DNA of 64,000 bases from Callorhinchus milii (Eukaryota). This document shows, piece by piece, positions 9,098-40,744 of the stretch; within the stretch, counting starts at the first letter, position 1, and every line of letters starts with the position of its first letter. Made by a program: the position numbers and the translations under genes. Under the pieces are notes generated by a model. It made no database searches. It saw only the letters and a list, made by a program, of their open reading frames with translations, and had not been told where the DNA came from. Location: the NCBI RefSeq assembly GCF_018977255.1, contig NW_024704746.1, positions 27,094,001 to 27,158,000 on the forward strand, read 5' to 3'.

Positions 9098-9280
9098 AAT
9101 ACTAATACTAATACTAATGATCCTTGCAGTTGATATAGCGCCTTATCACGTCTTCGAGACGTCTCAAAGCGCTTCACAGAATAAACGGTAAAGTGAATCG
9201 ACCGTATATTTTGTCGGCGAAACACGGCAGCCAATCGCGCACAGCAGCGTCCCCACAAACAGTCGTGGATTGAGTCCCGC
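9098..9280 (-). mobile_element. 5'-truncated SINE flanked by a 25-bp direct repeat
   Basis: Family signature; gaggca(a/g)gaatccagcttgtgaaat at 9073-9097 and 9292-9316. Confidence 0.83.
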
Positions 9281-9689
9281 AATTGTGTTCGGAGGCAGGA
9301 ATCCAGCTTGTGAAATGGGATATAGTAATAAGAAAATGATTGGAAGGAGTCGAAATATTTGTGTCAAAAAATATATAATTTGTTATTTGAATTTTATTAA
9401 ATACAACTGTATTATTGAAATATATAGTAAGCAATGATCTGAAATTCAAAAATACTCAATCACCCATGTTTATATAAAAATAAATAGCTATTCATCATTT
9501 TTTTAAACTTAAATAGATGCATTTAATACGTTCAGATAACTGTTGATACAATTCGTAATGGAGTCTGTGCTAAAATCTTGATGCAGGAATCTAGAAAGCA
9601 GCTGCTATAAACACAATCATTTTGGCCCTAACTCTGTTGCTTTAGTGTCAGAGATTTTCTTCTTCCGACTTCACTGATGTCCCTCGATG

Positions 9690-12461
9690 TTAACTCTCAT
9701 ATTCAATAGACTTTGCCAGTTCACTGGAATTCATTCTCTCTCCAAACCGCTCGTCGAACAGTTTATTCTGTCTTGTGCTGAAATGGTTCTTCCAGTCTCC
9801 AACAGTACCTAAAGAGAAGAGGCGCATGGATTAGACTGGGAAACAGTAATAATAATTGGATTTGATACAGCGCCTCATCACGTCCTTGAGACGTCTCAAA
9901 GCGCTTCACAAGACAACCCTGTAATGTGGATTGACTGGATATTTTCTGGACGAAAACACCTTTGTAACTTTTGAACACATGTGATTTGGGGATCTGCTCT
10001 GGGGAGGAAACTAAAAGAAGATGTTGCGGTGAGCCCTAAGGAGGGTATAAAGGGTTTCAATGAATTGAATCCAGGGAATCCGTGGAAACAGATTGACTAG
10101 CGTGCTGCCAGATACGCTGACTACAAGCAGATCAATTCAGCCTTCATCCCTTCAGGAAACTGGATGCAAGTCCTGCGAGGTGACAAACTTCTCTGTTGTG
10201 CCACTCAGTCGGCTCAATGTTACCCCAAATGCCCATCTAAACAGTTCTGATATTATTGCAAAGCTGTAGCCATGGCAACCCTCCATTATTATTGGCTAAA
10301 AATGAATTAAACCTCTAATTGTATTATCATAATAATTTTCGCATTTGACATAGCGCCTTATCAATCACTATTGAGTCTGATCACCCTATCAGTATCAAAT
10401 AAACTCAGAGGAGACGAACCTTTTCGGAATATCAGCCTCTTGTTGGATGTCAGAGCGCACACAGTGTTATTGGCATCGACCTTTTCCTTCTGCGCCTGTT
10501 CCTTCATCTCATTAAAGGACGATTTCCTGGTGATGTCGTCAATTTGCTCAGAAGTCAGGTTGACACCCAGGAAGGTGCTGATCTGCTCAACGCTCTCGGT
10601 CGGATCCTGGAGAGAGAATTCCAGAACAAAAGTTTAATTATAAAAAGGGAAATGAGAGAGTATACAGTGCCCTTCATGAAATAATAATCTCAACAAATGT
10701 GTGACTTTGTAACAAGAACATATGACAATTTGTGATTTATTCTACTTTAGACATTTCGCCAACAAAATACACAGTCAATCTTTTTCCTGTGAAGTGTTTT
10801 GAGACCTCTCAACGATGTGATAAGGTGCTATATCAAATCCAAGTAATATTATTATTATTATTATTATTATTTAATGTGTCATTTACATTGTGTTTAATTT
10901 CTGAATGTTTAATTCAGAAATTAAACACAAATTTTCAGCGAAACTGAAAAATAATTTTAGTGTTGCGGAATAATTATTTCAGTTCTTTCAGTTGTTGTCT
11001 GGCCGCGTGTATATAATAAGTGTGGTGCATTGTTACAGATCTCGTGCGAAACAAGTGCAGTATCTCACCTTCTTCATGGCTTCGTAGTACAGAATGAGAA
11101 CATTGTCATCATTTTTGCGCTCCTCCCAACTGTGAATGTGATCGCACCACGAGCCACAAACAACTGCAATAGAAAAGAACAAATGTTCAGCAATCAGTCA
11201 TCTGGAAATGAGATTGTATTTAATTTCTTGCCCTCCCTCTGTGCCTCCCCTTATCCATTGTCGTTAAATTCTGCCATTTTGATTTACGTGTCAAATTGAA
11301 CCGTATAAAGATTTTTCCTATTCTCACCGTCTCCGTTCAGGAACTTTTCCAAAAAGGTGGTCCATTTGTCAACGGTTGGCAGGTTGGGATTATCTTTGTA
11401 GTAGTGATACAAGGAAACAGCAGTGTCTTTAGGGTTTCTGATGATGTAGATCATCTATTGAGAAGAGAGAACACAACATGTTTAGCAAAGATCATACAAA
11501 GAGCACACAAGGTTTTATATTTAATTAATAATAATTAAATATAAAACATATATACAACAGATCCTTAGAAACAAACCGAGCATCCCAATTTACATTTTAT
11601 TAGCAAAGAACACAAGATACTGCATTATTCAAGACAATATATGAATATGTTACATATATTTTTTGCAGATGTTATGTGTAAATTATTTAAGTAAAAACAT
11701 AAGAATTTGCTAAACGAAAGAAGACCGAAGTCCACCCCGTTTGCCTTCCACCATCCTGGCAGCCACTTGCACATGTCATGTCCCAAACTATATACTGTAT
11801 CCCCGAGATATTATTTCTTAACAGAAACCTATCTCATTTGTTCTTGAAATAATGATCTACATTAAACATTTCAAATCGATGAAAAGCAATAGTTTTGATA
11901 CATTTGATTTGTTTATAAAGCAACTCTCTGAAGCATTGCAGAATACAGCGTCTCCTTTAATTGTACAATAAAATGCCAAGTGTCTGTACCTTGCATTTCT
12001 TGGTTTTGAGCTGCACTGGCAACATCTTGTAGTTCAGGTGTGTGGGGATCAGTCTCGGGGAAGGAAGATTTCTCAGGTCCTCGTATTTGGAAGGATCTCC
12101 AAACTCAATGGGAGAGGTCAGTGTCACTGTTCCACAGCCATTTGCACCTTGTTGAGTGCGGTACAGGTTTTTCAGGATCTCTGCCAGCCAGTGAGTCCCT
12201 GTGAGGGTTGAAGAGAGAAAGACAATGAGAGTGAGATATTGTCAAACTATTATCAATAGAAACACACCATCTTCCCTATCTCTGGAGATTTGATTTTATA
12301 TTTAATGTGTAAAACTTCTTACCTGACTTTGGGTAGGACACCAACAGCACATCATCCTCTCTGGCTTCAAAGGAGTCCAAGGTGTGTAAAAGCTCTTTTG
12401 ATGAGCGTGTAGAAAAGGGAATCCCGTTAAAGGTGTGGACGAGGGCTGACTGGGATGGCAT
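9690..12461 (-). CDS. Cytosolic sulfotransferase, SULT6B-like, copy A (291 aa, 6 coding exons)
   Basis: Exons 12461-12323, 12198-11990, 11454-11328, 11163-11069, 10606-10420, 9808-9690 (139/209/127/95/187/119 nt = 876 nt). All introns GT-AG and phase-consistent. Motifs: SYPKSGTHW (5'-PSB loop), PTHL (catalytic His), RNPKDTAVS (3'-PB), RKGTVGDWKNHF. LDSFEAREDD, EFGDPSKY and PSPRL resemble SULT6B proteins. Confidence 0.93.
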
Positions 12462-13089
12462 GTTGCAGTCGGATTCTCTCTCAGATCTGAGGCTGTGGAA
12501 ACGAGAAGAGACTCTGAATGATGAGAGGCTGGAGATCCTCCTGTATATATACATCCTCTCTGTCCTGTCGTAGTTACACCATTGACGCAGCTGTCAGTTA
12601 CAGGAAAATGATTTCACAATTGACCAACCCAAGATTGTTGTAATGGAATATTGAAAAACCACAATATTTATGTATTTTCTTAACCAGAAACGTATTACTG
12701 ATAACTAACTCGAATTGTATGGTTTGTGTGGCTGTTGTCTATTGATGCAATGTTTGGAGGGACTTCCAATATATGGACCTGTTCACTTTTTCAAATACCC
12801 TTTACGTCTTTAAATCATTCTTACATATTGCCTTTAATTGATTTTGCAATCATTGTGACTGGATGTCATCAATAATTGTACCTCTTTTGCAACTGTGCGC
12901 TGATGCATTGAAGATAAATAACACGGTTGCAAACAATGATGGTGATTGATTATTATGCAGCTTCGCTTCTCATAGAAATGTGAGTCAAACATCCTCCAGA
13001 CAAGCAATCACATAGATATAAGTTTATCGTGTTATAAGGGAACTAGAATACAGTACAACCCAATACATTCATGGTGTCCTGATTAAACA

Positions 13090-13225
13090 TCGAAACAGGA
13101 GGAGGCCATTCAGCCCCTCAAGCCTGTTCCGCCATTCTATAAGATCACGGCTGATCTGTACCTCAAGTTCAATTACCCTCCCTTGCCCCGTATCCCTTAA
13201 TACCCCGACCTCACAAATATAAACA
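13090..13225 (-). mobile_element. CR1-like LINE 3' end fragment
   Basis: ggaggaggccattcagcccctcaagcctgttccgccattc...gctgatctgtacctcaa. Related copies at ~15470-15615, ~23080-23165 (opposite strand) and ~59275-59480. Confidence 0.7.
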
Positions 13226-13574
13226 TCTTCAACGTCAGAGTCGGTTACTATAGGGTGAATAGTAGCAAAGTATTTTCACGCTGTTTGGTGAGGCAGTAAC
13301 CAATTGGTGCAAATTTTCAGATAATCACAAAAAAATTCAACGTGAGGTTCAGAAAACAAACAATTACACGGAGAGAGGATGGAAGGTGACATTCTCTGCC
13401 ATAAACTGTTGCTGAAGCAGAGGCTATAAATGGGAAGAGGAGGAATATTAAAGGATATTGTGAATGAGCGGGCAAACGGTATTAGATTGGCCAATGTGTA
13501 GAAACAGCTACGGCGTCAGCCATTGTGTGCTGCAACATCCTATGTTTCATTCAATTTATCTCACTGTACATTTA

Positions 13575-13853
13575 ATAATAATAATCCTTCCATTTTACAT
13601 AGAAACTGATCATGTCGTTGAGGCATCTCAAAGTGCTTCACAGAATACACTGTTAAGTGAACTGACTGCATATTTTTTTTAAGGGATTATTACCTCCAGA
13701 ACTGACTAACAACTTGGTTCCTACTTACTGCTGGTAAACAGAGACGTATGGAGTAAGGAAATTTGCCTAAGGTTTCACTCTGCCCGGGAATCAAACCCAG
13801 GTCCTCTCGCTTGTGAGGCGAGTGCTCTAACCAATATGCTGCAGGACACCACA
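13575..13853 (-). mobile_element. Internally deleted SINE with tRNA head
   Basis: Head, central motif and tail present; part of the 3' body missing. Confidence 0.8.
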
Positions 13854-14287
13854 TTTATGGTTTGAAAAGCCTTTCTTTCACAGGGGAAAGAAAAGCAAAG
13901 CTGTTATCTTTGTCAATCTTTACTCCTCAGCATTCATTAAAACTGATTGATTGATTTGGTGTTGTTTAGTAGAATCCACAGCCTTTACAAATGTTACTTA
14001 TCTGGTGGAAATGACAATGACGCGAAAATAAGATTTTTCCATCTTGTCATGTCATTACTAAACAGGAAAACATGATGCAGCACGATCGTGCGTCCAGAGA
14101 AATAACAGGAAGTTGCAAAAGAGTTATTGGGTGGCGAGATGGTAGGGCTTTCCTCTTTCTTTGAATTGATTTCTTCTTTCCTTAAATTCTTGAGATCATT
14201 GCTTTATAATTTGGAGTTGCGCAAAAACTTCCAGGAAGTTCTTAAATTGAGTTCATTTGAAAGCAGAGTTCCACAGAATGTACTGAA

Positions 14288-14735
14288 AACAACAACAACA
14301 ACAACAACAACAACAAGATTTCATTTCTAGAGCGCCTTTCACGTCAGGAGGACGTCCCAAGGCGCTGGACAGTTGGGTCAGGACCCGAGTAGGGGGGAAA
14401 TGGTCAGGGTGAGGGGAGGGAAGGGAGGGAGCGAGGAGGGGGTAGAGAGTCAAGAGCGGAGCTGAAGGTGCGGTCAAAGAGAAAGGTCTTGAGACCGGCC
14501 TTGAAGGAGGAAAGGGAGGAGGCGGCGAAGGCACTGGGGGATGGAGTTCCAGAGCCTCGGGGCTGAGAGGCTGAAGGCCACCGATGGTAGGGCGGTTGGG
14601 GCGGGGGATGTGGAGCAGACCGGAGCCGGAGGAACGGAGGGTACGGGCAGGTAGGTAGGGGGATAGTAGGTCAGAGAGGTAGGAGGGAGCGAGGCCGTGA
14701 ATGGCCTTGTAGGTGAGGATGAGGACCTTGAATTC
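14288..14735 (-). mobile_element. L2 LINE 3' end (same subfamily as 5187-5783)
   Basis: Reverse complement closely matches 5187-5783 (AFSLSAPRLWNSIPQCLRRLLP) with a single copy of the 46-bp unit; (CAA)n tail. Confidence 0.87.
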
Positions 14736-15814
14736 GACAGAAGTGAATTCTGTGATATTCTGTGATATTCAGAGAATTCTGCATCTTGTGGGCGACGCTT
14801 GATGTTCATTTCCTCATTCCTTGTGTAGGATTTGATATTCTAAAATTAAGATAAATGTAAATTAGTGTCAGTGCTAATTGTGTGGTACAGTATTTCTGAA
14901 AATAGATAACAGCAGATGCATCCACTATGCAATGGCACATCTCTCAGAACACTTGTTCCCAACTTTCTGAGTGCTTTATTTTATCTATGATGTATTGTTA
15001 ATATTTTTGGTATCAAAGTCCCCTGCGGATGTTATACTTTTTTTTCTTTATGAGTTCTTGTCTGGCCTTGGCAGTTGCACCCTTCCAAGCCCAGAAAATG
15101 TTATTTTCCAAATGAGATTGATACCTTGAGCTGAGCCAGAGATTTAAATCATGATCTGGCAATGAAGAAAACACAGAATTATAGAGTATTATAGTACAGA
15201 AGGAGGCCATTCGGCCCACTGTGCCTGTGCTGGCTCTTTAGAAGAGCTCCCCAATCACACAAGCGCATTGGGACGTCCTCCCGATGTGAAAGGCGCTGTA
15301 CACATGTCATTTGTTGTTGCTGATGCTGTGTTTCATTGTGTTCACTGTGGATGTGGTGAAGATTCACGGGAACTAAAGAACATGGGTAAAATGTGTGATA
15401 TAGTCTGTCAAAATCAATGGCTGTTTAAAGTCAAATTTATTATCACCAGACTGTGGGACATTGCTGTGCGTAGGAACATAGGAACAGGAGGAGGCCATTC
15501 AGCCCTTCAAGCCTGTTCAGCCATTTAATTAGATCATGGTTGATCTGTACCTCAACTAATCCTTTCAAATCCAATTTCACGCTTTCTCCCCATATCCCTT
15601 AATACCCTGACCTCCCATTACCCGTGCTCAGATCGTTAACTGCATTTTTCTAGACGTTTACAGTAACTACATTTACTTAACAATAAATTCTGTGAAGCGC
15701 TTTGAGACTCCTGAAGTTTGAATGACAGATTTTATTCTGTGGCGATGTCCAAATTGAGTTCACTTACACCACTGATTGTAGAGCAAAACCTCAGAGAAGC
15801 ACATCTAATACTTT

Positions 15815-16228
15815 GCAAACAACAACAACAAGGTCAACAACTTGCATTGACACAGCGCCCCTCACGTACAGTAGCGTCTGAGAGCGCTTGACAGTGGCGG
15901 AGCACGACCCTGAGCTAGAGGGAGCGGGGAGGCGAGGGTAGGCTCGGCCAAAGAGGAAGATCTTCAGGCGCGATTTGAAGGTGGAGGGGGGGAGGAGTGG
16001 GGGCAAAGCACAGGTGTAGAGGAGGAGTGTTCCAGAGTTTCGGGTCGCAGTGGCTAAAAATGCGGCCACTGATGGTGGAATGGAGGGCACCAGGGACCAG
16101 ACGAGCGGAGGCAGAGGGTAGCGGAGTGGGGGTGGGGGGGGGGGTAAGCAGGTCGGAGAGATAGGGAGGTGCCAGGGCATGAAGGGATTTGAAAACGAGT
16201 GAGAGGATCTTGAAATCAGCCGTAAGTA
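15815..16228 (-). mobile_element. L2 LINE 3' end (second subfamily)
   Basis: ORF track: FKILSLVFKSLHALAPPYLSDLL...PKLWNT; TFKSRLKIFLF; (CAA)n tail. Confidence 0.83.
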
Positions 16229-16504
16229 AAGCCGATAGCAGGAGTTTGAAAATGACCATTGGTAAACTTCTCTATTGCTTTTCGTTTCTTTATTCAGGAA
16301 ATAAGTAACAATCACAAAACTATGAAGTATCAAAAAAAATTGTTCAATGTGTGACTGCAAATGAAAAATCTAAGTACATAATAAATCTGAATTTAATACA
16401 CTATTAAATTGCGATACAATTTCTTTTCATTTCCTGAGTTCATACCATGAACTGAATGTGGTATTTCTGGGATACATCAATGTAAACATCTCAAAAAACA
16501 CATT

Positions 16505-16660
16505 TGATCATTCAATCCACGACTGTTTGTGGGACAGTGCTGTGTTTTACCCACAAATGTACAGTCAATTCACTTTACAGTACATTCTGTGAAGCGCTGT
16601 GAGACGTTTAAACGACGTGATAAGGCGCTATTTCGAATGTAAGGATTATTTTTATTATTA
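16505..16660 (+). mobile_element. SINE 3' fragment
   Basis: Family body and tail signature. Confidence 0.78.
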
Positions 16661-16723
16661 AACATAGCAAACAGAAGTTTTCACCATGTTTCTCAAACTC
16701 TACTTTGACACTGTCCTTTGATG

Positions 16724-18881
16724 TTAACTTTCATATTCAATAGACTTTGCCAAATCACTCAAATTCATTCTCACTCCAAAATGCTCATCGAATAGCTTAT
16801 TCTGTCTTGTGCTGAAATGGTTCTTCCAATCTCCAACAGTACCTAAAAATAGAAGACAAATGATTAGACAATGAAGACCATGTGTGTAACACGTGAAAAT
16901 TCAATTAAAAAGTGGTGTTGAATGTTCTGTGGTCAAAGTAATAATAATAATAATCCTTGCATTTGATATAGCGCCTAATAGTGTTTTGGGGACATCTCAA
17001 ATTAATGACCACCCACTGGTATTACTATTGTTATATTAAATTATATTATGATGTTATATAATATATTGTTATACTGCACTGTTATTATTTCCATTATTGA
17101 GATGGAAATAACTCTATAACTATTTATTAGGGAGACATTTCCATCCGGTCTAGACGTTTTTGGCTGAGGAGCTTCACTATGGTTCGATGTCACAAACTAT
17201 ATTTACCTTTTCGGAATATCAGCCTCTTGTTGGATGTCAGAGCGCACACAGTGTTATTGGCATCGACCTTTTCCTTCTGCGCCTGTTCCTTCATCTCATT
17301 AAAGGACGATTTCCTGGTGATGTCGCCAATTTGCTCAGAAGTCAGGTTGACACCCAGGAAGGTGCTGATCTGCTCAACGCACTCGGTCGGATCCTGGAGA
17401 AATAATCACAAGGAAAAAAAGCTTATTATGAAAAAGGCGAAGGGTTTGTTCATGTAGAATTCTGTGTGTGTGTGAGTTGAGTGTGAGTGTGATTAAAAGT
17501 ATTGCGCTGTGAGATGCCGTCGTCTGAATCGCAATTCTCTTGAATTGTGGATGGATTCTTCCCTCAATAAATATCTACCGGTATTTGTAACTTCTTCCAC
17601 ATGTAATTGTGAAGTAACTTGTTCATTCCTACTCCGAAACATGATCATAACATTCTTATTATTATCAATTTGGATGTGAGATACTTAGACAAAGTGTAAA
17701 TGTGGTATAATTTCATATCTGGCAACACATTTTCTACAGTATCTCACCTTCTTCATGGCTTCGTAGTACAGAATGAGAACATTGTCATCATTTTTGTGCT
17801 CCTCCCAACTGTGAATGTGATCGCACCACGAGCCACAAACAACTGCAATAGAAAAATAGAATAAGTGTTAAGTAAACAGTTAATTGGAAGTGTGATTATA
17901 TTCGCGGTAGTTTCTCTTCATTGGCAAACTGAATGAGTTGGTCAGTTGATTGATATTAAAGTTAAGTACCAATATTTGTCTGTAATAATATTTCATTTAA
18001 GGGCAGTGTTAAAATCTTTTGTGGAATCTGCAACCTGAATGTTTTTGACATTGTAAATCTCACCGTCTCCGTTCAGGAACATTTCCAAAAAGGTGGTCCA
18101 TTTGTCAACGGTTGGCAGGTTGGGATTGTCTTTGTAGTAGTGATACAAGGAAACAGCGGTGTCTTTAGGGTTTCTGATGATATAGATCATCTGTGAGAAG
18201 AGAGAACACAACATGTTTAGCAAAGATCATACAAAGAGCACACAAGGTTTTATATTTAATTAATAATAACAATATTCATTACATTTGATACTTGGCTTTA
18301 TCATGCCGATGGGAATATGTTGTAAAGTGGATTGACTGTATATTTTGTGGGCAGAATAGGCACTGTTCTTAATGTAAGGATTATTGTGATATTTATCAAG
18401 TGTCTGTACCTTGCATTTCTTGGTTTTGAGCTGCACTGGCAACATCTTGTAGTTCAGGTGTGTGGGGATCAGTCTCGGGGAAGGAAGATTTCTCAGGTCC
18501 TCGTATTTGGAAGGATCTCCAAACTCAATGGGAGAGGTCAGTGTCACTGTTCCACAGCCATTTGCACCTTGTTGAGTGCGGTACAGGTTTTTCAGGATCT
18601 CTGCCAGCCAGTGAGTCCCTGTGAGGGTTGAAGAGAGAAAGACAATGAGAGTGAGATATTGTCAAACTATTATCAATAGAAACACAACATCTTCCCTATC
18701 TCTGGAGATTTGATTTTATATTTAATGTGTAAAACTTCTTACCTGACTTTGGGTAGGACACCAACAGCACATCATCCTCTCTGGCTTCAAAGGAGTCCAA
18801 GGTGTGTAAAAGCTCTTTTGATGAGCGTGTAGAAAAGGGAATCCCGTTAAAGGTGTGGACGAGGGCTGACTGGGATGGCAT
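16724..18881 (-). CDS. Cytosolic sulfotransferase, SULT6B-like, copy B (291 aa)
   Basis: Exons 18881-18743, 18618-18410, 18190-18064, 17842-17748, 17393-17207, 16842-16724. Same sizes and motifs as copy A; no stop or frameshift seen. Most divergent last exon (DEHFGVRMNLSDLAKSIEYES*). Confidence 0.93.
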
Positions 18882-19156
18882 GTTGCAGTCGGATTCTCTC
18901 TCAGATCTGAGGCTGTGGAAACGAGAAGAGACTCTGAATGATGAGAGGCTGGAGATCCTCCTGTATATATACATCCTCTCTGTCCTGTCGTAGTTACACC
19001 ATTGACGCAAACTTCAGTAACGGAAAATGATTTCACAATTGACCAACGCAAGATTGTTGTAATGGAATATTGAAACACCGTAAAATAAACTTTACAGATT
19101 TTTTAACTGACCTCACATATTAAAAGTTCTATTTAAACAAGTGAGAAATACTGCAA

Positions 19157-19359
19157 ATGTAGGTTTAAGTGGTTTTGTAGATATAGATTTACTGATATTC
19201 TGAAAATTCACATGGGTCGAGATCAGTAGAGTTGTTATTTCCACATATTGTAGACCAATGGAAAGCATTGCAAAATACAAATAACTCTACTGATCTCGAT
19301 CCATGTGAGTTTTCAGAATCTCAATAAATCGATATCTACAAAAACAATTAAATCTACAT
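19157..19359. repeat. Imperfect ~80-bp inverted repeat (hairpin, MITE-like)
   Basis: 19157-19240 (atgtaggtttaagtggttttgtagatatagatttactgatattctgaaaattcacatgggtcgagatcagtagagtt) is the reverse complement, with mismatches, of 19279-19359; loop ~38 nt. Confidence 0.85.
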
Positions 19360-19784
19360 GTCATTAGAATATTATATTATAATATATATAAAATAACATA
19401 ATAGGAATTATACAGTTATATATAATTATATATATATTATATATAATATAAATTATACAGTACATTCTGTGAAGCGCTTTGATATAAATGCAAGGATTAT
19501 TCTTATTATTTCACCAGATCCATCTTTGACAGAGCATTTTCTTCCTCACACCTGAGGTTGCTTTGGTTTTCCATCCTTATCAGGAACACTTGTGAGTGCT
19601 AATAATCCAATCTGACACCAAGCTTCCCCTGAACTCAGATGAATTTAGTTTCACTCTGCCAAAGGAATGATGGGGAAAGGAGGGTGCAACATATTTTGAA
19701 ATGTTCCAGCCATAGTAACTGATATTCTGAAAAAATAATAGGAAGCACTTCTCTGTTTTAGAAAACAATGTTCTCCAGATACTG

Positions 19785-19962
19785 TAATAAAAATAATAAT
19801 CCTTGCATTTAATGTCGCCCCTTATCACGTCATCGAAACGGTCTCAAAGCGCTTCACAAAATATACTGCAAAGTGACTTAACTGTATATTTTGTGGGCAA
19901 AACACTGTCAGCCGATTGGACACAGCAGCGTCCTCACGAACAGTTGTGGATTGAGTGACCAT
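19785..19962 (-). mobile_element. 5'-truncated SINE
   Basis: Family body and tail signature. Confidence 0.8.
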
Positions 19963-20144
19963 GACTAATATGTGCGTGTACTTGTGAAAGAGTGAATTCT
20001 CCCCATTATGCAAGGTTAATGGGCAATCAACTATTCTATTATAATGCCAACCAACATGACTAATAAGTGTGGCGTCTCACAAGCTTCTCATAAACAACTG
20101 ATTAGTCAGATCAAAACTGATAGAACTGGTTCATTTCAATGCAA

Positions 20145-20575
20145 CACCACCAACAAATTACATTGCGCAGCACCTTTCATGTCCGGAGGACGTCCCAATG
20201 TGCTGGATAGTCAGGGATTTGGACCTGAGCTGGGAGATGGGACCAGGAGGGGTGGAGGGCAGGGAAGGTGGGGATAGGTGGGTGGCTGAAGGCGCGGTCA
20301 AAGAGGAGGGTCTTGAGATGGGACTTGAACAAGGCAAGGGATGGAGCGAGGCGACGATATTATGTCAACAACAACAACTTGCACTTATCTAGCACCCTCC
20401 ACGAAGGGTAGCGTTTCAGAGTGCTTAACAGTGGCGGAGCCTGACTCCGAGCCAGGGGGAGGTGGTCGTAAACACGGTCGAAGAGGAAAGTTTTCAGGCA
20501 GGACTTAAAAGAGGGGAGAGAGGGGGCAAGGTGGAAGGATTGAGGGAGAGTGTTCCAGAGTTTTAGGCCATCCAT
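20145..20575 (-). mobile_element. Two adjacent L2 3'-end fragments
   Basis: KLWNTLPQS...SLPSFKSCLKTFLFD in the ORF track; two L2-type tails at ~20145-20210 and ~20365-20430. Confidence 0.75.
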
Positions 20576-20785
20576 CCGGTATACCTGACCCAGTATATTT
20601 TCAGAGAGAGAGAGAGCCTTAAAGAGACTTTTGGATGCTCGAAGACTATTTTTTTTTGCCAGCCGGGTGTCTGCTACATATGGAAACCCATCACCGTTGC
20701 TTAAGAGTCTCCAACCAAGCTGAGAATTCCACGCATCCCATCTACACCATGGAAATCCCAGAGAGAGATTGTTGGAATGGAATGC

Positions 20786-20817
<32 letters not shown>

Positions 20818-21354
20818 GGAGAGATGCATCCTGCTTACCTAATTACGGAAAGGATTAGGCGCAGGTTGGCAAGAGCCAAGGCTTGGAGCAAGTCCCTACT
20901 TAATGCACAAAGACAGAACAACAAAAGATAAAGATATTTCTTTACTCAAAGATTACTGGAAAACGATGGTTGAGACTAGGACTTGGACTTGTTTAATGCT
21001 GTTAAATTGGGTATTGTGTAAAGATGAGATGAAATTGACTTACTTCGTCATCCCAATCAATCTTGTGATCCATCATCTTGTGAAATTTTCAATTTCTCTT
21101 CCTTCAATTTTGACTCTTTCTTCTCTGGTAATCCCCAATTGTCACTTTTCAATCGTTACTTACTTTCTTATATTACAGAAATCACAATGATGTTCTGGAA
21201 ATATGACTTTGCCTATTTTAACTGGAAATTGTGACACTGATCAGTCAGAACAGACAGGAAGTTAAGAAAGCTTCAAGGGAATGACTTGATAACCCCAAAT
21301 TTTGTGGAAGGTTATATAGCGTGGAAACAGGCCGTTGAGATAAACTAGTCTACG

Positions 21355-21610
21355 TTCAGGGCGAAACATTGGGCAAGTTTCCTTCCTCCACACTCCTCTG
21401 TTTACCCAGCAGTAAGTAGGAACCCGGTTGTTAATAATAATTTGGTCACTCAATCCACAGCTTTTTGTGAAAACACTGCTGTGTGAAATTAGGGACTGTG
21501 TTTCGCCCACAAAATATAGTCAATTCACTTTACAGTATACTCTGTGAAGCACTTTGAAACATCTCAACAAGGTGATAAGACACTACATCAAATGCAAGGA
21601 TTATTATATG
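21355..21610 (+). mobile_element. SINE lacking the tRNA head
   Basis: cctctgtttacccagcagtaagtaggaacccggttgtt central motif, body and tail. Confidence 0.82.
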
Positions 21611-21639
21611 ATGTTTATACTCTACATGAGTAGAGTATA

Positions 21640-21980
21640 AACCACCCCTCCCCTCTACCGCTCCCCTCTATTGCTTTCGTCCTCATGTAGACATCACATT
21701 TCCTCTTAAATGTGTCATTGCTTTCTAGTTCAACCACAGCTTCCATCCGTCAGTTCCACCATCTCACCACCCTCTGTGCAAGAAGTTCCTCTTAAACACC
21801 TGTGAGATCTGCTGCTAATTTATCTTTATGTCCCTTTATTTCAGACTCAGCCACACAGCCTGTTAACGCTCACGTAATTTAATTATTTCATGATCTTAAA
21901 CATCTCCATCAGGTCCCTTCTCAATCATCTCTTTTCCAGAGAGGAAAACTTCACCCTGTCCAGTCTTTCCGGGTAGCTAT
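21640..21980 (-). mobile_element. Degenerate CR1-like ORF2 3' fragment
   Basis: ttcctcttaaatg...gttccaccatctcaccaccctctgtg...tcaggtccctt...cttttccagagag...tccagtctttcc pattern of reversed CR1 ORF2 C-termini. Confidence 0.6.
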
Positions 21981-22645
21981 GTGATGTCTGACAATTGTTT
22001 CCATTGTAAAACATATCTTGTTCTTGTGACACACATTCTTGTGAAATATAATGCCTGATTATAGAATATGAGTGCTCGTCGGACATCAATATCAATGGCA
22101 AGCTATGTGGTTTTAGCTGGTTAGACTCTAGCAGTGCCACGCTCTGGGTGGAAGGGAGAGAGGAGGATTGATTTCCACGGCAGTCTTCGGGAATTATTGG
22201 AAATAATGTTTCATAACTCAATCAATATGACAAGTTACAAAACTTATAGTAGAATTATAAGTATACCGCACTTATATTAGAATTTTGAACATTACAGGAA
22301 AAAGTCAATGAGTATATTGGTTTCACTTTTTTATTGAAGTGCAGTGAGAAGAAACAAACCACAAAGCTGTTCAATAATAAAAATAAATATTCAGATAAAT
22401 TAACAACAATCAAAAATATTCATTGATCTAATCCTTGGGTTATGTGGGTAATAAGTTTTATATATAAAGAATACAATTCAACACATCATAAATATTACAC
22501 GCAGCACTGAGTACACTAAGCTCATTGCCTCATGAACCTTATGCTGCAGTTTAAGTAAGAAATTCCTGCAATAAATTATTACAAATACAAATATTGTTTG
22601 AATCCTAAGCACGAGATTTTCTACTTCAAAAAACATCCTTCAATG

Positions 22646-25181
22646 TTAACTCTCGTATATAATAGACTTTGCCAGTTCACTGGAATTCATTCTCTCTCCA
22701 AACCGCTCATCAAATAGCTTATTCTGTCTTGTGCTGAAATGGTTCTTCCAATCTCCAACAGTACCTAAAGGTTAGAAGGGCAAATAGATTAGTTTGGAAC
22801 ATGTCTAACAGTCGAATAAATAGTGCGGAACATGGCAGTCATTTATCAAATATATACATATATATGGTGTCCAACACATAACACAATGTTTAATAAGAAA
22901 ATTAAATATGTCAACCATCCCCCTACGTATATTCCGTTATGACTGGTTCTCAAAGGATCAGCAGCAGCAACGCTTAAAGTCAAAATAACTCGAGCAAGTT
23001 GTACTCTCCTCAACCTGAGAGGACCAGGAAATCTAACAGAGACTTCAGTCAACACAGAGACATTCTTAATTAGTAAAAGGGGAACTGAGGTTGAGGTACA
23101 GATCCGCCATAATTTATAGAATAGTGGAACAGGCTCTTGGGGCTGAATGGCCTACTCCGGCTCTATAAGAATCGTCCCATTTTACCCAATTAGCTCTGAA
23201 TTTACCTAAATCTGCTGTGACTGTAGCGAATTGTGATCATTAATACAATCTCACTATTTCAGCTCAATCCTGTCACCAAATAAACTCAGAGGAGACGAAC
23301 CTTTTCGGAATATCAGCCTCTTGTTGGATGTCAGAGCACACACAGTGTTATTGGCATCGACTTTTTCCTTCTGCGCCTGTTCCTTCATCTCATTAAAGGA
23401 CGATTTCCTGGTGATGTCGCCAATTTGCTCAGAAGTCAGGTTGACACCCAGGAAGGTGCTGATCTGCTCAACGCACTCGGTCGGATCCTGGAGAAACAAT
23501 CACAAGAAGAAAAGCTTGTTATAAAAAGGGAGATAAAACTATCATTAATTTAAATATGAATATTTTCCTCATGGCCCAGTAACAGATACTGTTCAATGAG
23601 GATGAGAATCTCTTTTGCCAGTTTAGTAACTTACAAGAAATGTGTGTATATGAGGAATAGGATTTTCCTGCTTTAGGACAACGGCACATTGTGAATGATG
23701 GGACCCAAAGTGCTGTGGAGTTGAGTGAAATCCTCCTGAATTGTTGGTCAATTCTTCCCCAATAAATATTTGCTGGTATTTGTAACCTGTTCCTCATATA
23801 GTGAATGAATTGGTGCCCTGTGGATTCTGATGACTAGATATATATGTAATTGCAGAGATATTACAAGGGTTCTTACTTGTTTAGACCCAATTTGGATGTA
23901 AGATGTGACATAGAATAAAGCAGAACCTTTGTGCACGACCTTACCTTTTTCATGTCCTCGTAATATAGAATGAGAACATTGTCATCATTTTTGTGCTCTT
24001 CCCAACTGACAATATGATCGCACCACGAGCCACAAACAACTGCAATAGAAAAGAATAATTGTTTAGCAATTTGTAGATCTAGAAATCTAGATTTTATTTC
24101 CAGGAAATTTTTATTTATTCACAAATTGAGAGAATGGGTCAGAATTTTAACATTAAATTTAGTGACAATAACTACTACTACTAATAACGATAGTAACAAT
24201 AACTACTACTACTAATAATAATAATATTAGCAATCACTAACTGTGACATAATCTCACCTTCTCCTCTCAGGAACATTTCTAAAAAAGTGGTCCATTTGTC
24301 AACGGTTGGCAGGTTGGGATTATCTTTGTAGTAGTGATACAAGGAAACAGCAGTGTCTTTAGGGTTTCTGATGATGTAGATCATCTGTGAGAAGAGAGAA
24401 CACAACATGTTCAGCAAAGATCACACAAACAGCACTAAATATCAGTGCTCAAAGAGCACAATAATAATCAAAATATTGTTCACTGAATGCACATAAATTA
24501 TGAAACAAAACAGATATGTGTAAGTGTAAGGTTAAGTAGGTAACACATTTTAGGCTTAATTATGAATTATTAACAATTTTATGGAAATGTAAGATTATGA
24601 GTATTTTGATAAATTTTAAGTCTTTATGAAACATTAACATTGTAATATGTTGCATGAAAACCATTTCTCTAATGTAAGGATTATTGTGATATTTATCAAG
24701 TGTCTGTACCTTGCATTTCTTGGTTTTGAGCTGCACTGGCAACATCTTGTAGTTCAGGTGTGTGGGGATCAGTCTCGGGGAAGGAAGATTTCTCAGGTCC
24801 TCGTATTTGGAAGGATCTCCAAACTCAATGGGAGAGGTCAGTGTCACTGTTCCACAGCCATTTGCACCTTGTTGAGTGCGGTACAGGTTTTTCAGGATCT
24901 CTGCCAGCCAGTGAGTCCCTGTGAGGGTTGAAGAGAGAAAGACAATGAGAGTGAGATATTGTCAAACTATTATCAATAGAAACACACCATCTTCCCTATC
25001 TCTGGAGATTTGATTTTATATTTAATGTGTAAAACTTCTTACCTGACTTTGGGTAGGACACCAACAGCACATCATCCTCTCTGGCTTCAAAGGAGTCCAA
25101 GGTGTGTAAAAGCTCTTTTGATGAGCGTGTAGAAAAGGGAATCCCGTTAAAGGTGTGGACGAGGGCTGACTGGGATGGCAT
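22646..25181 (-). CDS. Cytosolic sulfotransferase, SULT6B-like, copy C (291 aa)
   Basis: Exons 25181-25043, 24918-24710, 24384-24258, 24039-23945, 23487-23301, 22764-22646. Intact splice sites and motifs; minus-strand AATAAA near 22330-22335. Confidence 0.93.
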
Positions 25182-26646
25182 GTTGCAGTCGGATTCTCTC
25201 TCAGATCTGAGGCTGTGGAAACGAGAAGAGACTCTGAATGATGAGAGGCTGGAGATCCTCCTGTATATATACATCCTCTCTGTCCTGTCGTAGTTACACC
25301 ATTGACGCAACCTTCAGTACCGGAAAATGATTTCACAATTGACCAACGCAAATAAGATTGTCGTCACGGAATACTACAACAACATTCTCATTATTGTTTT
25401 TCCTCAGCCCAAGATTTACTTTTCTGATATTTTAACAAACTTCCCAATTTAACAATCCAATCAGGAACTCGTGTCAATTAGCATTAATAATAAACATTGC
25501 ATTTGATATAGAGTCGCATCACATCTTTGAGACATTTCACGGAATATACTGAGAGTATATATTTTTTGTGGGCGAAACACTTTACGTTTTGCACTGCACA
25601 GGAATCAAACCCAGGTCCTCTCGCTTGCAAGGCGAGTCCTCAAGCAATTGCTACAGGATCCCACATCTTAATCATTCCCAATATGTGACAAAGTGTTGTT
25701 TGAGGGGTTCTTCCACAGAATTGTTTACTGATACTCTGAGAATTCACAAAGCGTGAGAACAGTAGCTGTGTCTGTTTTGCAATACTTTCCGTTGCTTTTT
25801 ATTATGTAGAAATAGGGACTTGTTATTGGAAATAGATCAGCCTTTGGAATAGGGAAGTAATTTGTTGTTGTGATATAATATTCTTCACTATTTCTGTTAT
25901 CACCATCAATTCACTGCCCTTAGTCACTACACACTTCTGTGTGCTGATGATCAGCTCTGATCAGATCTTCCTCTACACAAGCCTCATTGGGCCCAAAGAG
26001 TTATTGCTGGACATGGAGGAGACCAATAACAGAAGCATTTCCAGGACAAATATTATTTAAGGGAATTGAATTGAAGATGAAGGGAATTGGAAATAGCGAA
26101 GAATATTATAGTACCACAACACATTGCACTTGTATAGCATCTTTCACATATAAAGGACGTCCCAAGGCGCTGGACAGTCAGGGATTTGGACCCAGTGCTG
26201 CGAGTTGGCATTGGGGGAGGGTGGAGGGCAAGGAGGGTGGGGGTAGGAGGGTGACCGATGGTGCGGTCGAACAGGAGGGTCTTGAGACGGGCCTTGAAGG
26301 AGGCAACTGTTGACCAACACGGTCTTTAGGACCTTTCTATAGCAGCCTGTCTAACATAGTGACAGCTGTAATTAATGCTGGTCTTAAACCCATTTAAAAC
26401 AATAGAATTCATAAGGTAAAGTGATGCTAATCTACAGATAACCTGTTAATAGGACCCAATGAAGGATTTTATCCTAATAATATACATGTTTTAAGGCTGG
26501 TAAAATGTCCTACAGAATTTTGTTAAGCCGTGGATTGCTGTATTAAACTCCTAATTCAGTCAATAACTTTACAAATGTTTGGGAGGAATTTCTCCTCCAA
26601 ATAGCCCCAAAGCCAAACAGACAGACTTTACTTCTCTGTCCCAACT

Positions 26647-26959
26647 TTTCACGGAATATACTGAGAGTATATATTTTATGTGGGCGAAACACTTTACGTT
26701 TTGCACTGCACAAATATCAAACCCAGGTCCTCTCGCTTGCAAGGCGAGTCCTCAAGCAATTGCTACAGGATCCCACATCTTAATCATTCCCAATATGTGA
26801 CAAAATGTTGTTTGAGGGGTTCTTCCACAGAATTGTTTACTGATACTCTGAGAATTCACAAAGCGTGAGAACAGTAGCTGTGTCTGTTTTGCAATACTTT
26901 CCGTTGCTCTTTATTATGTAGAAATAGTGACTTGTTATTAGAAATAGATCAGCCTTTGG
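26647..26959 (+). repeat. Direct duplicate of 25535-25847 forming the palindrome spacer
   Basis: Starts tttcacggaatatactgagagtatat and ends gaaatagatcagcctttgg in both places. ORF track shows near-identical 62-aa ORFs at 25568, 26680 and (reverse) 27843. Confidence 0.92.
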
Positions 26960-28254
26960 GACAGAGAAGTAAAGTCTGTCTGTCTGGCTTTGGGGCTATT
27001 TGGAGGAGAAGTTCCTCCCAAACATTTGTAAAGTTATTGACTGAATTAGGAGTTTAATACAGCAATCCACGGCTTAACAAAATTCTGTAGGACATTTTAC
27101 CAGCCTTAAAACATGTATATTATTAGGATAAAATCCTTCATTGGGTCCTATTAACAGTTTAGCTGTAGATTAGCATCACTTTACCTTATGAATTCTATTG
27201 TTTTAAATGGGTTTAAGACCAGCATTAATTACAGCTGTCACTATGTTAGACAGGCTGCTATAGAAAGGTCCTAAAGACTGTGTTGGTCAACAGTTGCCTC
27301 CTTCAAGGCCCGTCTCAAGACCCTCCTGTTCGACCGCACATTCGGTCACCCTCCTACCCCCACCCTCCTTGCCCTCCACCCACCCCGATCCCAACTCCCA
27401 GCACTGGGTCCAAATCCCTGACTGTCCAGCGCCTTGGGACGTCCTTTATATGTGAAAGATGCTATACAAGTGCAATGTGTTGTGGTACTATAATATTCTT
27501 CGCTATTTCCAATCCCCTTCACCTTCAATTCAATTCCCTTAAATAATATTTGTCCTGGAAATGCTTCTGTTATTGGTCTCCTCCATGTCCAGCAATAACT
27601 CTTTGGGCCCAATGAGGCTTGTGTAGAGGAAGATCTGATCAGAGCTGATCATCAGCACCCAGAACTGTGTAGTGACTAAGGGAAGTGAATTGATGGTGAT
27701 AACAGAAATAGTGAAGAATATTATATCACAACAACACATTACTTCCCTATTCCAAAGGCTGATCTATTTCCAATAACAAGTCACTATTTCTACATAATAA
27801 AGAGCAACGGAAAGTATTGCAAAACAGACACAGCTACTGTTCTCACGCTTTGTGAATTCTCAGAGTATCAGTAAACAATTCTGTGGAAGAACCCCTCAAA
27901 CAACACTTTGTCACATATTGGGAATGATTAAGATGTGGGATCCTGTAGCAATTGCTTGAGGACTCGCCTTGCAAGCGAGAGGACCTGGGTTTGATTCCTG
28001 TGCAGTGCAAAACGTAAAGTGTTTCGCCCACAAAAAATATATACTCTCAGTATATTCCGTGAAATGTCTCAAAGATGTGATGCGACTCTATATCAAATGC
28101 AATGTTTATTATTAATGACAATTGACACGAGTTCCTGATTGGATTGTTAAATTGGGAAGTTTGTTAAAATATCAGAAAAGTAAATCTTGGGCTAAGGAAA
28201 AACAATAATGAGAATGTTGTTGTAGTATTCCGTGACGACAATCTTATTTGCGTT

Positions 28255-28340
28255 GGTCAATTGTGAAATCATTTTGCGTTACTGAAGGTTGCGTCAATGG
28301 TGTAACTACGACAGGATAGAGAGGATGTATATATACAGGA
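28255..28340 (+). promoter_or_regulatory. SULT proximal promoter with TATA box (copy D; equivalents at ~12540-12630, ~18960-19050, ~25260-25350 on minus)
   Basis: TATATATA at 28328-28335, ~85 nt before the ATG; upstream TTGCGTCAAT (TGACGCAA on the other strand) and TTGGTCAA. The block is conserved in all four copies. Confidence 0.65.
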
Positions 28341-28417
28341 GGATCTCCAGCCTCTCATCATTCAGACTCTCTTCTCGTTTCCACAGCCTCAGATCTGAGA
28401 GAGAATCCGACTGCAAC

Positions 28418-31136
28418 ATGCCATCCCAGTCAGCCCTCGTCCACACCTTTAACGGGATTCCCTTTTCTACACGCTCATCAAAAGAGCTTTTACACACCTT
28501 GGACTCCTTTGAAGCCAGAGAGGATGATGTGCTGTTGGTGTCCTACCCAAAGTCAGGTAAGAAGTTTTACACATTAAATATAAAATCAAATCTCCAGAGA
28601 TAGGGAAGATGGTGTGTTTCTATTGATAATAGTTTGACAATATCTCACTCTCATCGTCTTTCTCTCTTCAACCCTCACAGGGACTCACTGGTTGGCAGAG
28701 ATCCTGAAAAACCTGTACCGCACTCAACAAGGTGCAAATGGCTGTGGAACAGTGACACTGACCTCTCCCATTGAGTTTGGAGATCCTTCCAAATACGAGG
28801 ACCTGAGAAATCTTCCTTCCCCGAGACTGATCCCCACACACCTGAACTACAAGATGTTGCCAGTGCAGCTCAAAACCAAGAAATGCAAGGTACAGACACT
28901 TGGCATTTTATTATAATTCAAAAAGAAAGTGTTTACTCAACGATTCTCTCTTGTTTTATAAACAGACTACGGTAAATGAGTCCAAAACCTTACATTGTCT
29001 GTTTAAGTTAATGAGAAATAATAATAATAATAATAATCCTGGCATTCAATATACTGCCTGATCATCTCATTGAGGCGTTTGAATACATTGCGCAGGAGTT
29101 TACTGTGAAATATTGTGACTGTGTATTTTTGTAGGTAACCTCTAATGTTATCGTAATAAAACCAGTACTCTGCAATAAAGTACTGTATTATAGGCATATA
29201 GTAATAACAGGTATTAGTTAGAACAAAATATTATTTCTGGTTTATTGATATGTAAATACTTGAAATCATTAAGCACCCCGTGTTTCCTTATGAAGCTAAT
29301 TTGATTTCAAAATTAAATGAATGAATGTTTCTAAACATGTTGTGTTCTCTCTTCTCACAGATGATCTACATCATCAGAAACCCTAAAGACACTGCTGTTT
29401 CCTTGTATCACTACTACAAAGATAATCCCAACCTGCCAACCGTTGACAAATGGACCACCTTTTTGGAAATGTTCCTTAGAGGAGAAGGTGAGATTATGTC
29501 ACAGTTAGTGATTGCTAATATTATTATTAGTAGTAGTTATTGTTACTATCGTTATTATTAGTAGTAGTTATTGTCACTAAATTTAATGTTAAAATTCTGA
29601 CCCATTCTCTCAATTTGTGAATAAATAAAAAATTCCTGGAAATAAAATCTAGATTTCTAGATCTACAAATTGCTCAACAATTATTCTTTTCTATTGCAGT
29701 TGTTTGTGGCTCGTGGTGCGATCACATTGTCAGTTGGGAGGAGCACAAAAATGATGACAATGTTCTCATTCTGTACTACGAAACCATGAAGAAGGTGAGA
29801 TACTGCACCAAGTTACCCACCAGATCTGTAACAAACTGCTCTGTGTTTCTCTTGGAGATAAGAATAACGGATGGAACCACATTACACGCTGCAACAACTT
29901 GCATTTATTTAGTGCCCTCATGCAGGGTGGCATTCCAGAGCACTTAATGCTTAGATTGAATTGAAATATGATCAGAGAGCTACAAATGACATTTATATCC
30001 ATTGAGGTTCCTCATTTCAATGGTTAAATTTATTGTTCATAAACAGTTGTTTCCCTCTGAAAGATACTGAAAACTTATAATAATCCTCACATTTGATATA
30101 GCGCTTTGAATGTCTCGACGTCTCAAAGTGCTTCACAGAATATACTGCAACATGAATTGACTGTATATTTGTGGGTGAAAGTATTATTATGTATGAATAA
30201 TAAGTTGATTCAGCAGCTTATCACATCATTGAACTGTCTCAAATTACTTCATGAGATCTACTGGAAAGTGTAGTGACTGTATTGTGTAGAACATTATTGC
30301 TTTCACACATACTAATGAATTTTTCTTCTCTGAATATTTTATCAGGATCCGACCGAGTGCGTTGAGCAGATCAGCACCTTCCTGGGTGTCAACCTGACTT
30401 CTGAGCAAATTGACGACATCACCAGGAAATCGTCCTTTAATGAGATGAAGGAACAGGCGCAGAAGGAAAAGGTCGATGCCAATAACACTGTGTGCGCTCT
30501 GACATCCAACAAGAGGCTGATATTCCGAAAAGGTTCGTCTCTGAATTGACGTCAATAGGTGTCGTTAGCTTTTGATTTACAATAATACTGACATCACTAT
30601 ATGTTGTGGCGGCAGCAAAGGGCTCAGAGAGGTCCGTTAGGTAACATGCGGACAGCACGAATACTGTTAGTAATCAGTGTGTGTTCCAACCCTGAACAGC
30701 CTTCAGTTGCTATTTGTCCTTTTCACCACCTGTGGCCCTACTTTACATGTTAATTTAGATTGGGATTCAATTGCAAATTAAAGTCAGAGGAAGGAATTCT
30801 CCGACTCAAAGCACTTCACAGAATATACTGTAAAGTGTAGTGACTGTGCATTTTGAGGGCAATTTCCACTGTGAGTAATAACAGCACTTAAAGGGAAACC
30901 ACTGAACATAGTTTAGCATCACCCAGAGCAGTTACAATCACATTATGTGTCTCTAAACTCTTGTTTGTGTTAATTACATATATTTCCCAGTCTAATCCAT
31001 GCGCCTCTTCTCTTTAGGTACTGTTGGAGACTGGAAGAACCATTTCAGCACAAGACAGAATAAACTGTTCGACGAGCGATTTGGAGAGAGAATGAATTCC
31101 AGTGAACTGGCAAAGTCTATTGAATATGAGAGTTAA
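28418..31136 (+). CDS. Cytosolic sulfotransferase, SULT6B-like, copy D (inverted; 291 aa)
   Basis: Exons 28418-28556, 28681-28889, 29361-29487, 29700-29794, 30346-30532, 31018-31136. Translates MPSQSALVHTFNGIPF...SYPKSGTHW...RNPKDTAVS...RKGTVGDWKNHF...KSIEYES*. Confidence 0.94.
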
Positions 31137-31285
31137 CATCGAGGGACATCAGTGAAGTCGGAAGAAGAAAATCTCTTGACACTAAATCAACAGAGTTAGG
31201 GAGAAAATATTGTAATGGCTATATTTATAATCATGTATAGAAATCTTTCTCTTATATTATTATATTGATAAATGTGTAAATAGCT

Positions 31286-31796: not shown

Positions 31797-40744
<8,948 letters not shown>

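Follow-up and report, generated by a model that had tools for sequence, protein, structure and literature searches.

A stretch of 64,000 nucleotides of Callorhinchus milii (NCBI RefSeq assembly GCF_018977255.1, contig NW_024704746.1, positions 27,094,001 to 27,158,000 of the forward strand; called the window below, with all positions counted from its first letter) contains four sulfotransferase genes, A, B, C and D, whose exons resemble one another in a patchwork. Judged from sequence comparison, they are probably an old tandem cluster of four functional SULT7-family genes that has been patched by short, exon-centred interlocus (non-allelic) gene conversion. Old divergence stands beside very young patches in these genes, which is what non-allelic gene conversion produces, and the pattern is that of ordinary copy-to-copy conversion, not of a new shuffling mechanism.

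Exon mosaics and changing partners

Self-comparison of 8–33 kb, together with per-exon tblastn of the whole window, gave four complete six-exon copies, with A, B and C on the minus strand and D on the plus strand, and no extra copies or fragments (Table 1). The exon lengths are 139/209/127/95/187/119 nt in all four copies, every intron has canonical GT-AG ends, the frames are open, and the stop is identical in A–D. Among 24 runs listed, 16 (four studies) contain part of the stretch, and four contain half or more of its words. We compared the contigs of two DNA-like runs (X1 and X2) and two RNA-like runs (X5 and X9, RNA-like by guess and not on record as RNA) over positions 27000–31330. In the RNA-like contigs the introns of D are spliced out with GT..AG ends: those of X5 and of X9 each skip 124, 471, 212 and 551 bases, and X5 alone also skips 485. 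This splicing at the predicted introns speaks for the gene model and for transcription of the family.

The exons are 96.5–98.6% identical among the copies, with the differences spread unevenly over the six exons in all six pairs (Monte-Carlo p from <1e-5 to 0.007). Synonymous differences number 0–1 of ~82 sites in exons 1 and 2 and 0–2 of 40 in exon 5. Exon 6 has 5–7 of 21 in every pair except A-D (1 of 21), and in exon 4 copy C differs from each other copy at 6 of 15 synonymous sites, with A, B and D mutually at 0 of 15. Expressed as synonymous divergence, this is ~0 in exons 1 and 2, whereas exon 6 and exon 4 of C reach 0.3–0.5. Part of the divergence is confined to single copies, as in the seven B-only substitutions of exon 6 and the C-only patch of exon 4 (Table 1). 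The unconverted patches are 20–40% diverged, and because these high synonymous values match the residual intron similarity of 72–82%, the cluster looks old, with most of its exons made young again. The copy-specific substitutions comprise 25 strong-to-weak and 11 weak-to-strong changes, which shows ordinary AT-biased mutation and is no test of biased conversion.

The 5' end of the genes is homogenised as one block of ~660 bp, 98.3–99.4% identical in all six pairs. Within its core (~600 bp), A, B and C differ at one site and D at 4–5, and intron 1 is identical at 122–124 of 124 positions in all pairs. The four copies probably have one promoter type in common. Beyond the block, the likeness of C and D continues upstream for 1.3 kb in the form of a head-to-head palindrome. 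A 329-bp element of the arms (25532–25860, 26644–26972 and 28064–27736; copies 96–97% identical) recurs a third time as the spacer of the palindrome (~311 bp), where it is oriented like the left-arm copy. A TATA-like run lies at 28326–28336, ~85–95 bp before the ATG and inside the identical 5' block, with counterparts in A, B and C.

We compared flanks by anchored extension from every exon edge, and intron interiors after trimming 85 bp from each end, taking z<2 against shuffles as no similarity. For introns 2, 4 and 5, 16 of the 18 pairs of interiors were no more alike than shuffles; similarity remained in intron 4 of B and C (69/86) and in an A-D patch related to short interspersed nuclear elements (SINEs; 38/47). 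The tracts of high identity stop 2–80 bp outside the exons. Intergenic, upstream and downstream comparisons gave repeat-family matches alone, apart from the proximal 170–250 bp of promoter and 77 bp after the stop of A and D. Two repeat copies are colinear and in the same orientation upstream of A, B and C (Table 1), an order that is suggestive of old homology and not decisive. A SINE lies ~390–440 bp past the stop in both A (9115–9284) and D (31524–31658), in the same orientation; at 87%, these two are more alike than any other SINE pair listed. Between stop and SINE, A and D are unalignable.

An earlier, sequence-only reading of this DNA had described four SULT genes with near-identical exons and mostly unalignable intron interiors, in which the closest partner changes along the gene, and the comparisons above agree with it. 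Its pairings at the individual exon edges reappear as well. At the intron-2 donor, A equals D (23/23) and B equals C (44/45), the remaining pairs being alike over 13/13. At the intron-2 acceptor, the likeness of A and B that had been put at ~60 bp extends over 78/80 (76/76 contiguous). Intron 3 is shared as a whole by C and D (209/212), where the sequence-only reading had overlooked that B is alignable to both at 86/119. The exon-4 donor has one form in A, B and D (A-D flank 34/40) and another in C. The kinship of B and C at the intron-4 acceptor is there (39/44), though A-B (35/45) and A-C (36/45) are nearly as good, with D the odd one out. The intron-5 donor flank is the same in A and C (24/24), partly so in D (9 bp) and different in B (2 bp). 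Exon 6 with its flanks is 97.4% identical between A and D over 232 positions; by extension from the exon edges, the intron-5 acceptor flank agrees at 35/35 and the 3' flank past the stop at 73/78.

These likenesses fall into two groupings, AB/CD (A with B, C with D) from the intron-2 acceptor to the middle of exon 4, and AD/BC from there through intron 4. Approximately unbiased (AU) tests were run on fixed segments: the 5' flank (S1), the 5' core (S2), the intron-2 donor flank (S3), the intron-2 acceptor to mid exon 4 (S4), mid exon 4 through intron 4 (S5), exon 5 with flanks (S6) and exon 6 with flanks (S7). S4 supports AB/CD and S5 supports AD/BC, with both other trees rejected in each case (AU p<1e-5 and p ~2e-4, respectively). 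S3 leans to AD/BC marginally (AU 0.048), S6 has the same lean without significance (0.07), and for S1, S2 and S7 the likelihood tests favour no tree. Among 1227 ungapped four-way columns, 57 vary, and the informative ones divide into 4 for AB/CD, 6 for AD/BC and 0 for AC/BD. The four AB/CD sites are two dinucleotides; a fifth such site falls on the penultimate base of exon 3. When the full MAFFT alignment is used, these groupings have 70, 63 and 25 sites, with those for AB/CD and AD/BC lying in separate stretches.

Maximum chi-square analysis of 12 child/parent triplets gave p<0.01 in five, the other seven being not significant at 0.01. Three pass Bonferroni correction: D from A and C (0.002), C from A and B (0.0016), and A from B and D (0.0036). 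The breakpoint for D from A and C falls at alignment column 1873, slightly downstream in exon 4 of the switch point given in Table 1. Across this switch, C and D have three differences in the 212 bp of intron 3 and eight in the adjoining 95 bp of exon 4. That the intron is closer than the exon, the reverse of what selection on exons would do, indicates a tract boundary in exon 4 of D. The statement of the sequence-only reading that no single tree fits the four genes is upheld by the mutual rejection of S4 and S5, the clustered informative sites and the maximum chi-square results.

Assignment to the SULT7 family

Every protein search was run exon by exon, with the spliced model left unjoined. 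Five of the six exon peptides match Pfam PF00685 Sulfotransfer_1 (E<=0.1), colinearly at profile positions 15–92, 93–133, 136–166, 167–216 and 228–253. Exons 2–5 alone pass the 22-bit cut-off of PF00685 (33.3, 36.8, 33.4 and 33.9 bits), exon 6 scores 19.8 bits, and the exon 1 peptide gave no PF00685 match. The motifs for binding of 3'-phosphoadenosine 5'-phosphosulfate (PAPS) are PKSGT.W for the 5'-phosphosulfate-binding loop (5'-PSB) and RKG..GDWKN for the 3'-phosphate-binding site and P-loop (3'-PB/P-loop), along with a catalytic His. In A–D, PKS ends exon 1 and THW begins exon 2, and FRK ends exon 5 and TVGDWKNHF begins exon 6; the Gly codons of the motifs would be split over these exon joins. 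Exon 2 of all four copies has IPTHLNY, which contains the candidate catalytic His. The PAPS loops of SULTs are named in the account of SULT7A1 (PMC10939482).

For all six exons, the best solved-structure match is 5x2b. This entry, 5X2B, is mouse SULT7A1, which according to the same account is annotated in databases as Sult6b2 or SULT6B1-like (PMC10939482). Identity to 5x2b is 28/46, 36/69, 32/42, 21/31, 26/62 and 15/38 for exons 1 to 6, in sum ~158/288 or ~55%, hand-counted over the six exon alignments. The line for a SULT family is given as 45% amino-acid identity (PMC10939482). The ~55% identity of these genes to SULT7A1 exceeds that line. A subfamily usually asks for 60% identity, and ~55% falls under it.

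Three residues, His51, His94 and Cys234, are described as essential for C-sulfonation by SULT7A1, and His51 and Cys234 as absent from other SULTs with one exception (PMC10939482). Their counterparts are identical to 5x2b and invariant in A–D. THW aligns to positions 43–45 of the 5x2b chain (+7, residues 50–52), the His of PTHLNY to chain position 87 (residue 94), and the Cys of TVCALTS to chain position 227 (residue 234). Because 5x2b is the best match, the identity is above 45% and the three residues are kept, A–D are predicted to be SULT7-family cytosolic sulfotransferases and to represent a local expansion of the SULT7 locus. The neighbouring gene is that of RECQ1 (Table 1). Human RECQL lies at 12p12.1. 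The human SULT7A1 pseudogene is reported to map to 12p12.1 (PMC10939482). A search with exon 2 in the protein atlas returned the annotation 'sulfotransferase, chordates' and nothing narrower.

The four proteins combine a small number of variants, as had been seen from the sequence alone: 13 of ~291 residues vary (K/M, N/R, D/E, H/V, R/H, A/D/T, S/C and D/G, together with four B-only residues and one C-only residue in exon 6). Exons 1 and 2 (116 codons) encode the same protein in all four copies, and the variable residues are all in the C-terminal 175 residues. The ratio of nonsynonymous to synonymous divergence (dN/dS) is 0.07–0.26 in five pairs and 0.81 in A-D, a pair with just 12 differences. 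The combinatorial enzyme repertoire that the sequence-only reading had proposed is not borne out, with 13 variable residues, the first 116 codons identical and dN/dS above 1 in no pair. We also considered a link between the substrate-determining residue 146 of SULT1A3 and the variable residues that close exon 3; the alignment puts the latter at 160–166 of that chain, and the idea was dropped.

Conversion weighed against other histories

Under the conversion reading, the duplications would be old, with a background neutral divergence of roughly 0.2–0.5, and the introns would have been remodelled by indels and SINE insertions. Conversion would require similarity between donor and acceptor, and purifying selection would keep just the exons similar, so that tracts would begin and end in exons or at most 80 bp outside them. 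Each exon would be homogenised separately and would come to resemble whichever copy was its last donor. The outcome would be an exon-by-exon mosaic with escaped islands, presumably exon 6 in copies B and C together with the 3' part of C's exon 4, and with the 4.2-kb head-to-head palindrome of C and D, whose arms would be held at 98.5%. The pattern and its statistics are observed; the order, direction and timing of the single conversion events we infer from them.

Several points weigh against this reading. The evidence is a single assembly of one species. The sequence-only reading had claimed an old cluster under continuing non-allelic conversion, of which the age and the conversion stand (20–40% divergence beside at least 98.3% identity), and 'continuing' is argued only from the near-identity of the 5' block. 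The two alternating groupings can also be obtained from one reciprocal exchange and a few later events. Conservative four-way blocks give 10 informative sites, four of them the two dinucleotides, much of the AU signal of S5 comes from MAFFT-aligned intron 4 with SINE copies included, and S7, exon 6 with flanks, favours no tree by likelihood. Finally, the DNA contigs of other samples reach at most 484 nt, and the mid-exon-4 switch of D is in no case spanned with 31 letters to either side, so the long-range linkage is that of the assembly.

The sequence-only reading had also held that crossovers between inverted copies would invert the intervening segment and swap the 3' halves of the genes, which the geometry of the cluster permits. 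Such a history would start from an ancestral two-gene palindrome (A B, B' A'), in which one reciprocal crossover between the inverted B and A', within exon 4 or shortly past it, turned round the stretch that separates them. It would leave three minus genes and one plus gene (minus, minus, minus, plus), AB/CD upstream and AD/BC downstream, and C and D head to head at the old palindrome centre. The present gene order and orientation fit this, as do the AB/CD grouping of the 5' flank and of the segment between the intron-2 acceptor and mid exon 4, followed by AD/BC, the 1.3 kb of upstream sequence included in the C-D palindrome, the two similar SINEs past the stops of A and D, and the similarity that B and C keep in intron 4 (69/86). 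A crossover would, however, carry the introns along, yet A and D cannot be aligned inside introns 4 and 5 except for the SINE-related patch, and the stretch from +91 to +395 downstream of these genes is at noise level. In their 3' halves, A and D are alike only over exons 5 and 6 and no more than 77 bp of flank. No single crossover point would put the AD/BC likeness at the intron-2 donor on the right side, and the 3' exons of A-D (99%) and B-C (90–97%) are of very different ages. In addition, B agrees with A and D, not with C, both towards the 3' end of exon 4 and in its donor flank, and the A-B and B-C intergenic regions share repeat-family matches only. Several later conversions would be needed anyway to account for these misfits, and we regard this history as unlikely. 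We likewise find it quite improbable that one or more genuine swaps of 3' halves, through a crossover between inverted paralogues (B x D), shaped the cluster, with exon combinations that may still differ between individuals; a hint of such differences is given by RNA-like contigs of other samples that join D-type exons 2, 3 and 5 to a C-like exon 4.

Mis-assembly would place the mosaic junctions at mis-joins through near-identical exons, above all through the 660-bp 5' block, which at 98.3% identity or more in all copies could mislead a short-read assembler. The X1 and X2 contigs indeed collapse over the shared exons, so whole genes are unphased in these samples. These same contigs nevertheless cover every exon-intron boundary of D with few differences (for example 29743–30106, 30151–30372, 30512–30831 and 30833–31061), the window contains no N, and a 4.2-kb palindrome at 98.5% identity was resolved in it. 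The switches, moreover, occur at many places, inside an exon and in flanks tens of bases from exons, beyond the long identical block. The local junctions of D are real in other individuals, with the linkage of the gene halves given by the assembly, and we judge an artefact of this kind very unlikely. Letters of the paralogue type do appear in other samples at the D-only sites 28367, 28655, 28692 and 29477; contigs of the other copies fall on the same place, so these letters are not readable as alleles.

Two further explanations are more doubtful again. The copies might have diverged with no conversion at all, either as recent duplicates with fast intron turnover or as old duplicates whose exons were kept by purifying selection alone. 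Independent SINE insertions in the introns (the high-copy elements at 30045–30189 and 30770–30914) and dN/dS below 1 in all pairs would fit such a history. Selection cannot, however, hold synonymous sites (0–1 of 82 in exons 1 and 2) or intron 1 identical, and a recent origin cannot yield the 24–40% synonymous differences in other exons of the same pairs, or incompatible trees; we consider divergence without conversion highly improbable. Programmed or somatic recombination, joining different exon combinations in each cell or individual, would be in keeping with exon combinations unlike the reference in the RNA-like contigs. In a 795-nt contig of X9, positions 28692 and 29477 carry the D-only letters and exon 5 matches that of D throughout, with an exon 4 that differs from D at 7 positions (for comparison, C differs there at 8, A at 4 and B at 3). 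A contig of X5 joins a non-D letter at 28692 to the D-only letter at 29477, and one of X2 mixes C-state and D-state letters over 29355–29772. These mixed contigs may be chimeras, alleles or further paralogues: de Bruijn contigs can pass from one paralogue to another at any shared run of more than 31 letters, the samples come from other individuals, and there may be extra paralogues beyond the window. Among the best-supported joints listed on 27000–31330 none changes strand, and no recombination signal sequences were seen, though no search was aimed at them; this last explanation seems to us extremely improbable.

Coordinates, neighbours and known systems

Table 1. Positions of the four sulfotransferase genes, the shared tracts and the neighbouring gene in the window.
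Feature	Position	Strand	Exons, parts or partner	Measure or remark	Basis
Gene A	9690–12461	-	exons 12461-12323, 12198-11990, 11454-11328, 11163-11069, 10606-10420, 9808-9690		exon map, in-frame translation
Gene B	16724–18881	-	exons 18881-18743, 18618-18410, 18190-18064, 17842-17748, 17393-17207, 16842-16724		exon map, per-exon tblastn
Gene C	22646–25181	-	exons 25181-25043, 24918-24710, 24384-24258, 24039-23945, 23487-23301, 22764-22646		exon map, per-exon tblastn
Gene D	28418–31136	+	exons 28418-28556, 28681-28889, 29361-29487, 29700-29794, 30346-30532, 31018-31136	inverted relative to A–C	exon map, spliced contigs
Homogenised 5' block of A	11977–12632	-	~170 bp upstream, exon 1, intron 1, exon 2, 13 bp of intron 2		self-comparison
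5' block, counterparts			B 18397-19051, C 24697-25351, D 28248-28902		
C-D head-to-head inverted repeat	24697–28902		arms 24697-26644 and 28902-26956	98.5% over 1948 bp	self-comparison
B-C intron-2 donor flank	B 18366–18409	-	partner C 24665-24709	44/45; A and D share another 23-bp flank	
A-B tract, intron-2 acceptor flank and exon 3	11322–11534	-	partner B 18058-18269	97.2% over 213 bp	
C-D tract, exon 3, intron 3 and exon 4	23927–24421	-	partner D 29325-29812	94.3% overall	
Switch point in exon 4 of D	29730–29740	+		upstream D like C (GT dinucleotide 29729-29730, intron 3 209/212); downstream D like A and B	
C-only patch in exon 4	23948–24014	-		7 C-unique substitutions (6 synonymous against each other copy), then a different donor flank	
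A-D tract, exon 5	10411–10609	-	partner D 30343-30541	99.5% over 199 bp; adjoining intron interiors unalignable	
A-D tract, exon 6, 35 bp of intron-5 acceptor flank and ~77 bp past the stop	9613–9843	-	partner D 30983-31213	97.4% over 232	
Upstream repeats, relative to ATG			A -2067 to -1841 and -1215 to -1112; B -1473 to -1261 and -1011 to -907; C -1125 to -932 and -400 to -305		
RECQL (RECQ1 helicase) exons	33226–39434	-		tail to tail with gene D; best PDB matches ATP-dependent DNA helicase Q1, E ~1e-26	open reading frames

Beyond the RECQL exons lies a GOLT1B-like open reading frame at 49110–49283 (+). The stretch between them at 42001–44000 is GC-rich (0.65) and looks like a bidirectional CpG-island promoter. 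High-copy repeats, SINE-like together with a GC-rich element, are located at 27290–27579, 27870–28159, 30045–30189 and 30770–30914, with very high summed contig depth in all four runs. A GC-rich repeat family with long proline/serine-rich pseudo-open reading frames occupies 5160–5840, 7230–8390, 14250–14810 and 15790–16360, with strong negative GC skew at ~4–8 kb; it is probably a transposable element.

SULT7A1, characterised only in 2024, is presented as the earliest demonstrated case of an enzyme that attaches sulfonate to carbon (PNAS Nexus, PMC10939482). That four SULT7 genes with the three special catalytic residues intact lie in one cluster means that the family can expand. The genes here resemble mouse SULT7A1 (5X2B, PMC10939482) in length (291 aa, against 290 aa in the mouse), in the ~55% identity and in keeping the counterparts of His51, His94 and Cys234. 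They differ in number, with one copy in mouse and four in this cluster, and their activity is predicted from sequence. Within the library covered, and judged by title and abstract, our literature search found no account of SULT7 clusters or of conversion among them; multi-copy species may already appear in the supplementary orthologue list of PMC10939482.

The evolutionary behaviour of the cluster is well-known concerted evolution by interlocus conversion with escaped islands, and for recombination biology it is a clean but ordinary case of exon-limited conversion. Trees of these genes mislead unless they are built per segment, and the copies will be mixed up in assemblies made from short reads or transcripts. 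In the palindromes of the human Y chromosome, arm-to-arm conversion keeps inverted copies near-identical over kilobases. The C-D arms resemble them (98.5% over 1948 bp) but are far shorter, and the likeness ends 13 bp into intron 2, with the 3' parts different. The human SULT1A low-copy repeats also place cytosolic sulfotransferases on duplicated blocks whose paralogue history is described as hard to read (PMC555591). That is another SULT family, and its blocks are large segmental duplications in contrast with the gene units of 2–3 kb here (PMC555591). The GOT1 paralogues of Tigriopus californicus are reported as a case in which conversion yields a mosaic of high and low divergence and new protein combinations (PMC3728101); there, gene pairs were followed across populations, and here four genes stand in one assembly.

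A described parallel in pattern is HMA4 of Arabidopsis halleri, with tandem copies, variation of conversion within the gene, exons alike including their synonymous sites, and diverged long introns (bioRxiv 10.1101/2025.10.29.685298). The same preprint models divergence-dependent conversion with exon constraint, which gives a mosaic of nonsynonymous, synonymous and intron divergence in tandem paralogues. An exon-by-exon look arises in that account because conversion needs similarity, which selection preserves only in exons (bioRxiv 10.1101/2025.10.29.685298). HMA4 is described there as a plant metal pump in three direct copies, recent and selected for copy number, whereas the SULT7 cluster consists of four animal genes, one of them inverted, on a much older background and with intron interiors that are wholly unalignable.

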